NCBI RefSeq assembly: GCF_006345805.1
Contig: NC_042998.1
Coordinates: 139,438,001 to 139,502,000, forward strand
Length of the DNA: 64,000 bases
Direction: 5' to 3'
Source of the DNA: Octopus sinensis
Taxonomy: Eukaryota
Below, in pieces: positions 31,548 through 44,259 of this stretch (within the stretch, counting starts at the first letter, position 1; every line of letters starts with the position of its first letter). The position numbers and the translations under genes were made by a program. A model generated the notes under the pieces. That model saw only the letters and a list, made by a program, of their open reading frames with translations. It did no database searches and had not been told where the DNA came from.

Positions 31548-31626
31548 CCTTGGGCAAGTGTCTTCTATAGCCTTGGGCTGACCAAAGCTTTGTGAGTGGA
31601 TTTAGTAGACGGAAACTGAAAGAAGC
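31548..31626 (+). mobile_element. Left half of the tRNA-SINE split by the giant TA array
   Basis: CCTTGGGCAAGTGTCTTC..GACGGAAACTGAAAGAAGC matches 27976-28056. Confidence 0.85.
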
Positions 31627-31636
31627 ATGTTGTGTG

Positions 31637-34600
31637 TTATATAATATTATATTGTATATATATTATATAGATGTATATATAATATATATGTATATATATA
31701 TATATATGTATATATATATTTATTTATTTTTTATATATATATGTAGATATATATATATGTATATATATATATATGTATTATATATATTGTATATATATAT
31801 ATAGTATATATATATATATGTATATATATATATAATGTATATATATATATATGTATATATATATATATGTATATATTATATATGTATATTATATATGTAT
31901 TATATATAATGTATATATATATATAGTATATATATATATATGTAATATATATATATGTAATATATATATATATGTATTATATATATAGTATATATAATAT
32001 ATATGTATATATATATATATTATATATATATATATATATATAAAATTGTATATATATATATATGTATATATATATATATTTAATATATATATATGTATAT
32101 ATATTATTATGTATATTATATATATGTATATATATCTATATGTATATTATATATATAGTATATCTATATTATGTATATATATATATATGTATATATATAT
32201 AATGTATATATATATTAATGTATGTATATATATATATTGTAATATATATATATGTCATTATGATATATGTATATAATATATATGTATATATATATATATG
32301 TAATATATATATATAATATGTATATATATATATATGTGGTAATATAATAATGGATAATTATTATTTATATATATATATATTATATATATATATATGTCTA
32401 TTAATATATATGTATATGTATATATATATATATGTATATATATATATATATGTATATATATAATATGTAATATATAATATGTATATATAATATATATGTA
32501 TATATATATATATATAATCAAATATATATAATATTTAATATATGTATATATAAATTATATGTATATATTATAAGGTATATATATATATATGTATATATAT
32601 ATATATATATATACATATATATATCTATATAATATATATATATATAAACATATATATATATATATATAAATATATGATATATGTATTAATATATATGTAT
32701 ATATATATAATATATGTATATATATAATATGTATATATATATATATATGTTATATATATATATTGTATATATATATATATATGTAATATATAATATGTAT
32801 ATATATATAATATATAGTATAGATATATATAGTAGATATATATATATATGTATATATATATATATATTATATTATATATAATGTATATATATATATATGT
32901 ATATATATATATATGTATATTTATATGTATATATATCTATTATGTATAATATATTAGTATATATATATATATGTATATATATTATATATATGTATATATA
33001 TATATATATGTATTATATATATATGTATATAATATATATATGTATATATATATATATGTATATATATATATATTTAATAGATATATATATATGTATATAT
33101 ATATATATGTATAGATATTATATATATAATATATATATGTTATATATATATATATATATGTATATATATATATATAGATATGTATATATATATATATATA
33201 TGTATATATTAATATATATATGTATATTATATATATATATGTATATATAATATATATTATATATATATATATATATATGTATATATATATATATATATAA
33301 TGTATATATAATATATATATATATATATATTATATATATGTATATATATATATATATGTATATATATAATATATATATATATATGTATATATATATATAT
33401 ATATAATATATATGTATATATATATCTGTATATAATATATATATATATAGATGTTATATATATATATATATATATGTGTATATATATATGTATATATATG
33501 TATATATTATATATATAATATATATGTAGATAATATATATATATATATATATTATATATATATATATATATATATATGTATATATATATATATATTATAT
33601 ATCTATATCATATTATATTATATATGTATATATATATATATATATATATGTTATACTATATATATATATTAGAATGTATATATATATATATATATATATA
33701 TGTATAATATATATAATATATGTATATATATATATATATATATATTTATGTATATATATATAATATATATTGTATATTATATGTCTATATATATATATAT
33801 ATTGTATATATATATGTATATATATATATATATATATATATGTATATATATATATATGTATATATTATATATATATATATATATGTATATATAATATAAT
33901 ATATGTTATATATATATATATATATATTATATATATGTATGTATATATATATATATGTGATATATATATATATAGTATATATATATATGTATATATATAT
34001 ATATGTATATATATATGTATAATATATATTATGTATATATATATATATATATGTTATATATATATTATGTATATGTTATATATGTATATATATATATATA
34101 TATATGTATATATAATATATATGTATAGTATATATATATATATGTAATATATATATATATGTATATATATATATATGTATATATATATGTAATATATATA
34201 TATGTAATATATATGTATATATATATATATGTATATATATATGTATATTATATATATGTATATGTATATATATGTATATATTATATATGTATATGTTATA
34301 GATATATGTATATATATATATATGTATATATATATGTATTATATATGTATATATATATATATGTATATAGATATTATATGTATATATATAATATATGTAT
34401 ATATATATATATGGTATATATATATATGTATATATATATATATGTATAATATTATATGTAATATTATGTATATATATATATGTATATATATGTATATTAT
34501 ATATATATAATGTCTATATATATATATATATATATATATGTATATATATAATATATATATATTATATTAATAATATATCTATTATATATATATATATATA

Positions 34601-37600
34601 TGTATATATATATATATATATGTATATATATATATATATATATAATATGTATATATATATATTATATGTATATATATATATATATATTATATGTATAGAT
34701 ATATATATATATATATATATATGTATATTATATATATGTATTATATAATGTATCTATAAAAATTATGTATATATATAATATATATATGTATATTATATTT
34801 ATATATATATATATGCTATATAGCTATATGTATATATATATATGTATATATATATAGTATATATATATGTATATCAATATATTTGTATATATATCTATGT
34901 AATATAATATTATGTATTATATATATGTATATATATATAATGTATATATATAATATATATATATGTATATATATATATATGTATACTATATATATATGTA
35001 TATATATATATATGTATAATATATATATAGGTAATATAATATATAGTATATATATATATATGTAATATTATTATATATATGTATATAATATATATATATA
35101 TATGTAAATATATATTATATGTATATATCTATATATATATATGAATATATATATATATATATGTATATATATAGAATATATATGTATATATATAATATAT
35201 ATTATATATATATATATATATATGTATATATATAGATATATATATATATATATGTATATATATATATAATATGTATATATATATATAATATGTTATATAT
35301 ATATTATCTATTTATATATATTATATTATATATATTGTATATTATATAGTAATATATATATCTATATTTATATATATATATATATGTATATCATATATAT
35401 ATATATGTATATATATATATATATATATATATATATATATTGTATATATATATATATATATGTATGTCTATATATATGTATGTAATATATATGTATATAT
35501 ATATATTTATATATATATATATGTATATATATATATGTATATATATATATGTATATATATATGGTATATATATATATATGTATATATATATATGTATGTA
35601 TATCTATATATGTATATATATATATGTATGTTATATATATATATGTATATATATATATATATATATATGTATATATATGTATATATAATATATATGTATT
35701 ATAATATATTATGTATATATATATAGTATATTAATTATATTATATATGTATATATATATATATGTATATATATATATGTATGTATATATATATATGTATA
35801 TATATTATATATATATATGTATATATATATATTATGTATATATGTATATCTATATATATGTATATATATATATATGTATTATATATATATATATGTATAT
35901 ATGTATATATAATAATATATGTATATATATATATTGTATATATATATATATATGTATATATGTATATATATATATATGTATATATATATATGTATATATA
36001 TATATATATGTATAATGTATATATAATATATTGTATATATATATATATGTATATATATATATATATGTATATATATATATCTATGTATATTATATATATG
36101 ATTATATTATATATATAATATATATATATGTATATATATATATATATAATATATATGTATATGTATATCTATTTATATTATATATAGATATGTATATATC
36201 TGTATATATATATATGTATATATATGTATTATATAGTATATATATATATTATATATATGTATATATATGTATATAATATATATGTATATATATATGTATA
36301 CTATATATATGTATATATTGTATATATATATATATGTATATATTATATATTATATATATATATGATATATATGTATATATATATATATGTATATATATAT
36401 ATATATTGTATGTATATTATATATATATGTATATATATATATATGTATATATATATATGTATAGTATATATATATATGTATATGTATATTAGATATATAT
36501 ATAATGTATATATATATATATGTATATAATGTATATGTATATCTATGTATATGGTATATATATGTATATATATATATATGTATATATATATATATATATG
36601 TATATGTATATATATGTATATTATATATATGTATATGTCTATATATGTATATTATATATATATATGTATATATATATATATATATATGTATATGTATATA
36701 TATGGTATTGTCTATATAAATGTATATGTATATATGTATATGTTATAGATATATGTATATGTATATATATAATTATATTATATATATATATATATATATG
36801 TATATGTATATATATATATGTATATGTATATATGTATATGTATATATGTATATGTATATATATATATGTATATGTATATATATGTATAATAATATATATA
36901 TATATATATATATATATATATATTATTAGATATATCTATAAATATATTTTATATATATCATATATGTATATTATATATTATATATCTATATATATATAAT
37001 TATTATATGTATATATATATATATATTTAATATATATATATATATATGTATATATATATAATATATATGTATATATATATATGTATATATATATATCTAT
37101 ACTGGTATTTATATATATGTATATATGTGTATTTATATATATGATATATTATGTATATATATGTATATATGTATGTATATATATGTTATATATTATGTAT
37201 GATGTATGTATATATATGTATCTATTATATCATATGTCTATTATATATATATGTATATATATAATGTATATATATATGTATATGTATATATATATATGTG
37301 CGTATATATATATATATATTGGTATTATATATATATATATGTTAGATATATATATATGTATATATATATATGGGATATAATATATATGTAATATATGTAT
37401 AGTATATATCTATATATGGATATATATATATATATATATGTATATATAGATATATATATATATATATTATATCAGGATAGATGTATATATATATATATTA
37501 TACGTATATATATATATATACGTATATATATATATATATACGTTATATAGATATATGTATATATATATAATATATGTATATATATATATGTATATATATA

Positions 37601-43600: not shown

Positions 43601-44038
43601 ATATATATATATATGTATATATATATATGTATATATATATATATATATGTTAATATATTATATATGTAGATATATATATATATGTGTTATATTATATATA
43701 TTATATATGGAATTATATCTGGATATATATATAGTAATATATATATATATGTATATATATATAATATATAGTATATATATTATGTATATATATATAGATA
43801 TAAATGTATAATATATTATATATATATATATATATATATGTATATATATATATGTAATATATATATATATATGTATATATAATATATATATATAGTATGT
43901 ATATATGTATATATATAATATATATGTATATGTATATATGTATATATATATATATATATGTTATATATATATATATATATTGTATATATATATATATATA
44001 TATATATATATGTATATATATATATGTATATATATATT
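31637..44038. repeat. ~12.4-kb degenerate (TA)n / TATATG satellite in STAMBP intron 2
   Basis: Directly visible. Interruptions on the + strand are mostly G. Confidence 0.97.
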
Positions 44039-44052
44039 TATGCGCACCATTT

Positions 44053-44259
44053 ATGTGTGTATCTGTCTTTATCATCCCACCATCGCTTGACAACCAACAT
44101 TTACGTCCCGTAACTTAGTGGTCCGCCAGAAGAAACTGATAGAATAAGTATTAGGTTTACAAAGAATAAGTCCTGGAGTGATTTCTTTGACTAAAATCCT
44201 TTAAGGCAGTGCTCCAGCATGGCTGCAGTCAAATGACTGAAACAAGTAAAAGAATAAAA
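44053..44259 (+). mobile_element. Right half of the tRNA-SINE split by the giant TA array
   Basis: CATCGCTTGACAACC..GTAACTTAGTGG..GATAGAATAAGTA..TTACAAAGAATAA matches 28113-28210. Confidence 0.85.

Follow-up and report, generated by a model that had tools for sequence, protein, structure and literature searches.

Among the closest described counterparts of the locus reported here are human intronic expansions born from Alu elements. The GAA repeat of FXN lies in the central linker of an Alu. The ATTTC repeat of SCA37 occupies the middle linker of an AluJb, and the repeats of SCA10, SCA31, RFC1/CANVAS, and FAME1 lie in Alu 3′ tails (PMC8773600). In the window (the whole 64-kb stretch of DNA that was analyzed), we examined a SINE that is interrupted by a very long, degenerate (TA)n array. 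As in the human Alu-born expansions, a SINE-borne simple repeat is found at kilobase scale in the intron of a broadly expressed gene and the expanded tract contains interruptions and motif variants; as in the middle-linker cases, the repeat lies between two collinear halves of the element. The seed is different, however, being the (TA)n(TG)n spacer of an unrelated, apparently tRNA-derived SINE rather than an A-rich linker, and the motif is TA rather than a penta- or trinucleotide, in a state that belongs to a reference assembly and not to a disease allele.

Among mollusks, the MESC SINEs of Haliotis contain an internal (CA)n that expands (PMC4758252). The SINE described here appears to share their modular mollusk-type organization (an apparently tRNA-like head, conserved core, and tail) and likewise has an internal dinucleotide microsatellite that varies in length among copies, but the Haliotis elements carry (CA)n, with reported expansions that do not reach kilobases. 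The array also resembles long (TA)n tracts and AT-rich fragile sites in being very long, more than 90% A+T, and made of alternating purines and pyrimidines with strong hairpin potential. FRA16B and FRA10B are AT-rich minisatellite expansions with units of 33 to 42 bp, whereas the unit of the array never exceeds 2 bp. In mismatch-repair-deficient cancers, expanded TA repeats adopt cruciform structures and depend on WRN (PMC9890227); the array has a longest perfect TA run of only 35 bp and a hairpin energy that is explained by its composition. Finally, with classical satellite DNA derived from transposable elements the array shares a tandem length of more than 10 kb and a seed within a mobile element, but it has no defined monomer, higher-order repeat, or homogenized copies, and it is known from a single locus.

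Host gene and intron

The features on which the analysis rests are the following.

27900 to 28211, forward strand: reference SINE copy, with head, core, spacer, and 3′-truncated tail (sequence, alignment)
31218 to 31414, forward strand: STAMBP/AMSH-like coding exon, ...SKFIT, USP8_dimer/MIT-like N terminus (sequence, tblastn)
31415 to 45327, forward strand: intron of 13,913 bp that holds the split SINE and the array (donor GT at 31415, acceptor AG at 45326-45327)
31548 to 31626, forward strand: SINE left arm (core region), 5′ truncated and without the tRNA-like head (blastn, 88% identity to the copy at 27900; multiple alignment)
31627 to 31637, forward strand: first bases of the spacer, ATGTTGTGTGT, just before the array (in other copies, CCTGTCAT / CCCATCGT stands at the aligned spacer start)
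31638 to 44041, forward strand: degenerate (TA)n array with TG interruptions, 12,404 bp, interpreted as the TA portion of the SINE spacer after expansion (TRF, composition, TATGTAT context)
44042 to 44083, forward strand: retained 3′ end of the spacer, TGCGCACCATTTATGTGTGTATCTGTCTTTATCATCCCACCAT, the counterpart of TGTGTGTGTCTGTGTTTGTCCCCCTAGCAT in the reference copy (alignment, sequence)
44084 to 44259, forward strand: SINE right arm (tail), CGCTTGACAACC...GACTGAAACAAGTAAAAGAATAAAA (blastn to the tails at 28097-28211, 58251-58387, and 2033-2177; alignment)
45328 to 45404, forward strand: next coding exon, G followed by LFVEKLPAHPLYKSSEAAVVADNKK (donor GTATGT at 45405; AMSH alignment)

The host gene is STAMBP/AMSH-like, with a USP8_dimer/MIT-like region at the N terminus and a JAMM domain at the C terminus. 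When human AMSH was compared with the window by tblastn, it matched the exon at 31218 to 31414 with 55% identity over 58 amino acids, and the matches to AMSH exons ran in order, on one strand, from 31242 to 55849. The homologues, which are named STAM-binding protein, carry PF08969 at the N terminus and PF01398 and PF14464 (JAMM/MPN+) at the C terminus. The nearest relatives in the protein collection were 74% identical over exon 1 and 68% identical over the JAMM exons (the two contigs that were fetched were distant and uninformative). We take the gene to be broadly conserved, and its “housekeeping” status is an assumption carried over from the orthologues.

The exon at 31218 to 31414 is followed by a GTAAGT donor from 31415, and the codon split as AC/G across the intron restores a Thr, after which LFVEKLP continues the AMSH alignment. 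Because consecutive, phase-matched exons of one gene lie on either side, the flanks of the array are true neighbors. We therefore rejected a misjoin of two loci via TA tracts, and with it the concern, voiced in the original prediction, that misassembly of different loci had brought the two SINE halves together. The array makes up 89.2% of the 13,913-bp intron, matching the predicted 89% of 13.9 kb.

The split SINE and its relatives

The left arm of the SINE stops with GAAACTGAAAGAAGC at 31626, and the right arm begins with CGCTTGACAACC at 44084-44095 and extends as SINE tail to about 44259; both boundaries (31626 and ~44084) had been correctly predicted. By blastn against the reference copy (27900-28215), the left piece (31549-31630) corresponded to positions 77 to 161 with 88% identity and the right piece (44018-44169) corresponded to positions 163 to 312 with 73% identity (73 to 76% across comparisons), so that the split copy begins at about element position 77. 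Once joined, the arms aligned collinearly and without rearrangement to four other SINE copies in a multiple alignment, and the halves are thus collinear and in the same orientation, as had been claimed. No SINE sequence was lost or duplicated at the split, with the first spacer bases kept on the left and the last approximately 40 bp on the right. The array occupies exactly the TA part of the spacer, with the TG-rich spacer end preserved on the right side, which supports the earlier proposal that the SINE is split at its own internal microsatellite by the same TA/TG motif. A search of the two flanks for a target-site duplication gave AACCT(C)TGGG as the best candidate, with a score of 15, no better than chance, since random 50-mers drawn from the window do as well in about 21% of cases (p about 0.21). 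On grounds of parsimony, both halves probably come from one insertion event.

About 15 SINE fragments are present in the 64 kb, on both strands; they have left arms in common, there are two tail types, and truncation is variable. The reference copy, which had been described as intact, is missing the last ~90 bp of its tail. Its spacer is a TA/TG microsatellite of about 40 bp, or about 56 bp between the same landmarks, and the predicted growth of roughly 300-fold accordingly becomes one of about 200- to 300-fold, depending on the measure. At the same position as the array, the copies at 27900, 58108, and 60184 have spacers of about 10 to 56 bp with TATATATG/TGTG. Half-elements that stop or start at the spacer are found at 13733-13859, 17872-17986, and 9415-9829. 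The last of these includes a spacer of 181 bp (9649-9829), a modest expansion, and the copy running from 3316 to 2033 has about 250 bp of compound tetranucleotide repeats in its spacer (3170-2950); these expanded spacers elsewhere count in favor of SINE-spacer expansion. The interruptions of the array have the polarity of the reference-copy spacer (TG, not CA), but this match is weak evidence, because the 181-bp spacer has the opposite polarity relative to its SINE.

The heads of the copies at 27900 and 60184 (GGC..GCTGTGTGG...GGTTC.GGTTCAGTCCCACTG) resemble box A and box B in appearance, and CCTTGGGCAAGT may resemble the CORE/MIR core. These likenesses would fit a tRNA-derived, CORE-like SINE, which may be octopod. 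Across the window, ARAGORN found no tRNA and Rfam gave no matches. Metagenome contigs yielded no match to an exact 21-mer taken from the SINE core, and viral contigs yielded none to a 20-mer from the B-box region. A SINE 15-mer occurred at 120 loci in metagenome contigs, none of which had the SINE by blastn, indicating chance matches, and a literature search on four SINE k-mers found no papers.

Structure and proposed origin of the array

TRF reported one array at 31638-44041, with a length of 12,404 bp, a period of 2 (TA), 6378 copies, 77% matches, 8% indels, and a score of 14,249. Its base counts are T 6089, A 5374, G 852, and C 89 (A+T 92%), with no N. The GC fraction along it is 0.06 to 0.10, compared with about 0.27 to 0.43 over most of the remaining window. 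The composition is even from end to end, without an embedded element, and the array holds no foreign unique sequence or junction. Perfect TA runs have a median of 11 bp and a maximum of 35 bp. We assessed the repeat structure through longest repeats and autocorrelation, set against controls in which the units had been shuffled. Within the array no exact repeat is longer than 61 bp (55 to 71 bp in the controls), and no autocorrelation peak beyond chance was found at lags of 30 to 4000 bp (maximum z of 3.5). With a unit that never exceeds 2 bp and without higher-order repeats, the array is not a classical satellite, and the label “satellite” in the original prediction was a loose one; it is a giant degenerate microsatellite.

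The lengths of adjacent units are correlated (r = 0.16) and pure units cluster together (518 versus 447 ± 14), as local slippage would give. Purine/pyrimidine phase breaks number 945, or one per 13 bp, a density roughly three times that of shorter TA arrays; about 200 are of 1-bp indel types, and their contexts include TATTATA (109 times) and TATAATAT (99 times). More than half of the G residues (495 of 852) lie in the context TATGTAT. Point mutations that strike both strands of a self-complementary (TA)n alike cannot yield a G:C ratio of 852:89, so TG-bearing units must have been amplified.

Two other properties of the array were considered and set aside. It contains no AATAAA, but only about 0.5 would be expected (a first-order estimate from dinucleotide counts), and we therefore rejected selection against poly(A) signals. 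Its hairpin energy as single-stranded DNA is −45.7 kcal/mol per 300 nt, compared with −24.4 for a control stretch of intron; it folds no better than dinucleotide shuffles (z = −0.97), however, which led us to reject a special DNA structure beyond composition.

The best explanation, and one that we consider likely to be correct, is that the internal microsatellite of the SINE expanded in situ after insertion. An already 5′-truncated, apparently tRNA-derived, CORE-like SINE would have inserted in the sense orientation into an intron of the STAMBP/AMSH-like gene, its core and tail separated, as in its relatives, by a short (TA)n(TG)n compound microsatellite. We infer that the TA part of this spacer then grew in place to about 12.4 kb, probably by many small replication-slippage or unequal-exchange events, with larger jumps possible where long TA tracts form hairpins and stall forks. 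The 61-bp longest repeat and the absence of an autocorrelation peak fit growth in small steps and argue against an assembler looping through a block. The amplified units would have borne TG interruptions, which would account for the nearly 10:1 excess of G over C on one strand. Together with the 1-bp phase breaks, these interruptions keep perfect TA runs at 35 bp or less and should stabilize the array. An intron of roughly 1.5 kb would in this way have been inflated to 13.9 kb, with the array removed by splicing. We infer that the array is probably neutral, and intron ballast is its most likely status.

Alternative readings and biological meaning

The length of the array could be an artifact. 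The true TA spacer might be much shorter and have been stretched or garbled by a long-read assembler, polishing having failed within a tract of low complexity, in which case the locus and the join would be correct and the 12.4-kb length and the base pattern would be wrong. The 945 phase breaks in 12.4 kb, as dense 1-bp events, are possible long-read consensus errors; TRF gives 8% indels for the giant array versus 0 to 4% for the shorter TA arrays of the window, and the short arrays of 32 to 39 bp are 100% pure, as would be expected if polishing had reached only uniquely mappable arrays. We nevertheless think assembly inflation or noise unlikely, given that N is absent, as are the long exact or near-exact duplicated blocks typical of an assembler loop, that pure and impure units are clustered and not evenly mixed, and that random error would not give a 10:1 G:C asymmetry or a dominant TATGTAT context. 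Moreover, (TA)n is the dominant simple repeat, with a total of 328 Mb, in at least one octopod assembly (PMC6279123 supplement), which makes long TA tracts plausible biology, provided that the window comes from a cephalopod.

A left-arm-only piece might lie beside a separate, 5′-truncated right-arm copy whose leading TA tract expanded, and the window offers parts of such a configuration: the left-arm-only pieces at 13733-13859 and 17872-17986 end at the spacer, and the right-arm piece at 9415-9829, which lacks a left arm, opens with its 181-bp TA tract. The best target-site duplication candidate scores at chance level, and the identities of the two arms to the reference copy are unequal (88% versus 73 to 76%), but the lower value on the right is explained by divergence and truncation in the reference copy's own tail. 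Two independent fragments would have to share an orientation and have breakpoints that jointly rebuild a continuous element, with the first bases of the spacer on the left, its last approximately 40 bp on the right, and nothing missing or duplicated; the left piece would also have to be 3′ truncated, which is not a product of target-primed reverse transcription. We regard this combination as very unlikely. A long TA-rich tract might instead have been copied into the spacer from elsewhere through ectopic recombination, gene conversion, or template switching between TA microsatellites, for which the 12 TA arrays of at least 28 bp in the 64 kb, most of them adjoining interspersed repeats, would supply abundant microhomology. 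The array is uniform in composition, has no foreign unique sequence or junction, and shares its motif and polarity with the SINE's own spacer, and such a capture strikes us as highly improbable. Capture is hard to distinguish from a break-induced, template-switch expansion in place.

With in situ expansion of the SINE's own spacer as the preferred reading, the split SINE and its array are apparently an unusually large but ordinary transposon-borne repeat expansion. The array alone changes no concept, as expansions seeded by SINEs are already well known from primates. The earlier suggestion that SINEs seed giant satellites in this genome draws, within the window, on a single giant array and two modest expansions (181 bp and about 250 bp). 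It is conceivable, although we hold it to be rather doubtful, that the extraordinary (TA)n load of the genome was seeded mainly by the internal (TA)n(TG)n spacer of this SINE family and by other interspersed elements whose tails end in TA, that spacer lengths have a heavy tail reaching 10 kb or more, and that SINE-seeded TA arrays measurably inflate introns and act as natural, tolerated, TA-rich replication obstacles in essential genes. If its length is real, the array would be a clean natural case of a SINE-carried dinucleotide that grew about 200- to 300-fold and nearly filled an intron of a conserved endosomal deubiquitinase gene. Mobile elements would then enlarge introns and genomes indirectly, by delivering expansion-prone simple repeats and not through their copy number. 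A real length would likewise mean that a conserved gene can tolerate, and remove by splicing, 12 kb of interrupted TA, which bears on the idea that interruptions stabilize the most structure-prone dinucleotide repeat.

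The array and the SINE arms around it

A single array was reported by Tandem Repeats Finder at 31638-44041 (period 2, consensus TA, ~6378 copies, 77% matches, score 14,249), with 8% indels compared with 0-4% in the shorter TA arrays of the window. It comprises 6089 T, 5374 A, 852 G, and 89 C residues and no N. The GC content is 0.06-0.10 in all of its 1-kb bins, whereas most of the remaining bins in the window fall at ~0.27-0.43; the G and C counts stay level throughout and give no sign of an embedded element. The other TA arrays of at least 28 bp in the window (n = 11) are 28-181 bp long; the giant array is ~70 times the length of the longest of these, a size far beyond chance. 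We found nothing pointing to a function, neither an ORF nor an RNA family match. AATAAA does not occur in the array, which reflects composition, since a first-order estimate from dinucleotide counts predicts only ~0.5 occurrences.

One SINE family is represented in the window by ~15 fragments on both strands and has four modules:

Module 1: tRNA-like head
Module 2: core, ending ...GTGAGTGGATTTGGTAGACGGAAACTG(AAA/TGTG)GAAGC
Module 3: spacer, a TA/TG microsatellite
Module 4: tail, either of two types

The original prediction placed the array inside the spacer of a single SINE, and this observation was confirmed both by the repeat finder and by the collinear alignment of the two arms, the core part (left arm) and the tail (right arm), with four other copies. 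The sequence at 31549-31630 matches positions 77-161 of the reference copy (27900-28215) at 88%, and that at 44018-44169 matches positions 163-312 at 73%. When the joined flanks were aligned with the four copies, no sequence was found to be lost or duplicated. The left arm retains the opening bases of the spacer and the right arm its TG-rich end (TGTGTGTATCTGTCTTTATC; TGTGTGTGTCTGTGTTTGTC in the reference copy), and the giant array takes the TA part between them. As predicted, the spacer of the reference copy holds ~40 bp of microsatellite (~56 bp between the landmarks used for the split copy); spacers in other copies are ~10-25 bp. The reference copy itself, previously described as intact, lacks the last ~90 bp of its tail. 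The split copy, probably one insertion, is 5'-truncated and has no head; 21% of random comparisons scored as well as its best candidate target-site duplication or better. Half-elements beginning or ending at the spacer are present elsewhere in the window.

The host gene

A tblastn search with human AMSH as the query places the exons of a STAMBP/AMSH-like gene consecutively on the + strand between 31242 and 55849. Among database relatives, PF08969 is found in those of the first exon, and PF01398 and PF14464 in those of the C-terminal exons, which are annotated as STAM-binding protein. Two coding exons bound the array:

31218-31414, + strand, upstream exon, with donor GTAAGT at 31415
45328-45404, + strand, next exon, with acceptor AG at 45326-45327

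The codon split across the intron (AC/G) encodes Thr, and the protein alignment then runs on without a gap. The intron is 13,913 bp long and the array makes up 89.2% of it, in agreement with the predicted ~89% of 13.9 kb; the upstream exon lies 134 bp from the left arm and the next exon ~1.07 kb beyond the right arm. SINE halves could also look collinear if a misassembly had joined different insertions through their TA tracts, but such a join of two loci is ruled out because adjacent exons of one gene sit on either side of the array, making the flanks genuine neighbors. A polypyrimidine tract and TAG precede the upstream coding exon (31200-31217; …ttttctgtttactag/ctcacat…), which suggests that the ATG exon is probably not the first exon; the array-bearing intron would then probably be the second of the transcript.

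Internal order and probable origin of the array

The context TATGTAT holds 495 of the 852 G residues, which identifies the basic unit as (TA)kTG with variable k. Among the G-delimited units the commonest lengths are 16, 8, 6, 14, and 10 bp, and only 331 of the 853 are pure. Perfect TA runs reach 35 bp at most, and because no run exceeds this length the array falls outside the sequence criterion for cruciform-prone perfect TA tracts (PMC9890227). Purine-pyrimidine alternation is broken 945 times, or once per 13 bp, with ~200 of the breaks being of a 1-bp indel type (TATTATA or TATAATAT); these dense phase breaks in the assembled array may reflect either true decay or long-read error left unpolished. 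No higher-order organization was seen either in the longest exact repeat (61 bp versus 55-71 bp in ten unit-shuffled controls) or in the autocorrelation of G positions at lags of 30-4000 bp, where nothing rose above chance for ~4000 tests (maximum z 3.5). There is weak local order, in that adjacent unit lengths correlate (r = 0.16) and pure units adjoin pure units 518 times versus 447 ± 14 in shuffles. In contrast to a classical satellite, which is defined by a monomer or a higher-order repeat, the array has neither, and we therefore regard it as a giant degenerate compound microsatellite rather than as the satellite of the original prediction.

The most economical reading is that the SINE's own microsatellite grew in place after insertion. 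The strongest internal argument for this is strand asymmetry. In (TA)n, which is self-complementary, point mutation would yield TG and CA equally on one strand, and the G residues of the array outnumber C nearly ten to one; this excess implies that most TG interruptions were multiplied together with the units carrying them, starting from a small number of founders, and the SINE spacer provides just such founders with matching polarity. The polarity part of the argument loses force from the spacer of 181 bp at 9649-9829, where the interruptions run opposite relative to their SINE. Long duplicated blocks are missing, spacings are preferentially even, and neighboring units correlate weakly; together these features suggest that growth in place would have proceeded by slippage or unequal exchange in many small steps and not by a few large duplications. 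As single-stranded DNA, a 300-nt sample of the array forms long hairpins (−45.7 kcal/mol versus −24.4 for a control intron stretch), but dinucleotide shuffles of the sample fold just as well (z = −0.97), so that the hairpin energy follows from composition. No orthologous or allelic sequence of the locus was found in the protein collection or in metagenome or viral contigs. The array is probably neutral.

Other repeats in the window and known SINE-borne expansions

SINE spacers elsewhere in the window also look expansion-prone, and further elements adjoin TA tracts:

9649-9829, TA array of 181 bp built on a 49-bp higher-order unit (3.9 copies), adjoining a minus-strand right arm
3316->2033 (region 2020-3330), minus strand, SINE copy with arms ~1 kb apart
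49634-49783, SINE with a (CT)n(TA)n tract after its left arm
11500-11782, 61310-61476, 7937-8095, 8731-8878, 54026-54185, 49902-49960, 5394-5490, second interspersed repeat family

The SINE piece at 9415-9829 (minus strand) is a right arm only, and no left arm follows its spacer. The spacer of the copy at 3316->2033 holds ~250 bp of compound tetranucleotides, (TATC)n, (CATC)n, (TGTC)n, and (TATG)n (Tandem Repeats Finder 2949-3107). It also contains a (GA)n tract (2736-2797) and a MITE-like insert of ~450 bp (2241-2698) with nested inverted repeats, whose arms measure 37-50 nt and are 78-90% complementary. A (TC/CT)n(TA)n compound microsatellite occurs twice, at 27737-27829, 70 bp upstream of the SINE at 27900, and at 49787-49901, directly after the left arm of the copy at 49634. 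Members of the second family end ...GGAAAACGGATGTTAAACGATGATGATGAT and pass directly into (AT)n or (TA)n(TG)n; the family is another element type delivering TA microsatellites.

The window holds three further repetitive stretches. A 260-bp compound (TA)n(CA)n microsatellite (45794-46056) begins ~390 bp downstream of the exon at 45328-45404; its C residues lie on the + strand, so that its polarity is the reverse of that in the giant array, and no SINE arm was detected beside it. In the intron that follows the array-bearing one, 46060-47090 (+ strand) is C-rich (GC 0.51, GC skew −0.64), with degenerate 14-24 bp repeats and broken ORFs containing the motifs FTCTSSNVTYCIS... and ...HFCSIGHSLQHLSVLGL...RREQQFIFSL, which we take to be characteristic of the GIY-YIG endonuclease in Penelope-like elements; the stretch probably represents a decayed retroelement. 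A tandem repeat at 7616-7933 (unit of 66-70 bp, 3.5-4.7 copies, 77-83% matches; CAGTGCACCCTGACTGGCTCCCATGCCAGTGGCAC...) is unrelated to the SINE.

By way of context, in one octopod assembly simple repeats occupy 14.7% of the genome, with (TA)n and (AT)n together accounting for 328 Mb at 3.76 million loci (PMC6279123, supplementary Table S13), and SINEs contribute 11.6% to the genome of Octopus vulgaris (PMC13282606). Haliotis has mollusc SINEs in which an internal (CA)n expands (PMC4758252). Among primates, Alu A-rich regions harbor nearly all of the pathogenic pentanucleotide expansions found in introns; the SCA37 repeat occupies the middle linker of an AluJb and splits its element as the octopus array does (PMC8773600). 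The octopus array shares this anatomy but differs from the known SINE-borne expansions in motif (TA/TG), SINE family, and scale for a dinucleotide repeat. As to the broader proposal that SINEs seed giant satellites, an interspersed repeat adjoins 7 of the 12 TA arrays of at least 28 bp in the window, which supports the delivery of TA microsatellites by such elements, but "giant satellites" are unsupported beyond this single case. Expansion of a SINE spacer is largely supported at this locus and unproven as a genome-wide rule, and the array, as assembled, is an unusually large example of an already known phenomenon, SINE-borne repeat expansion.
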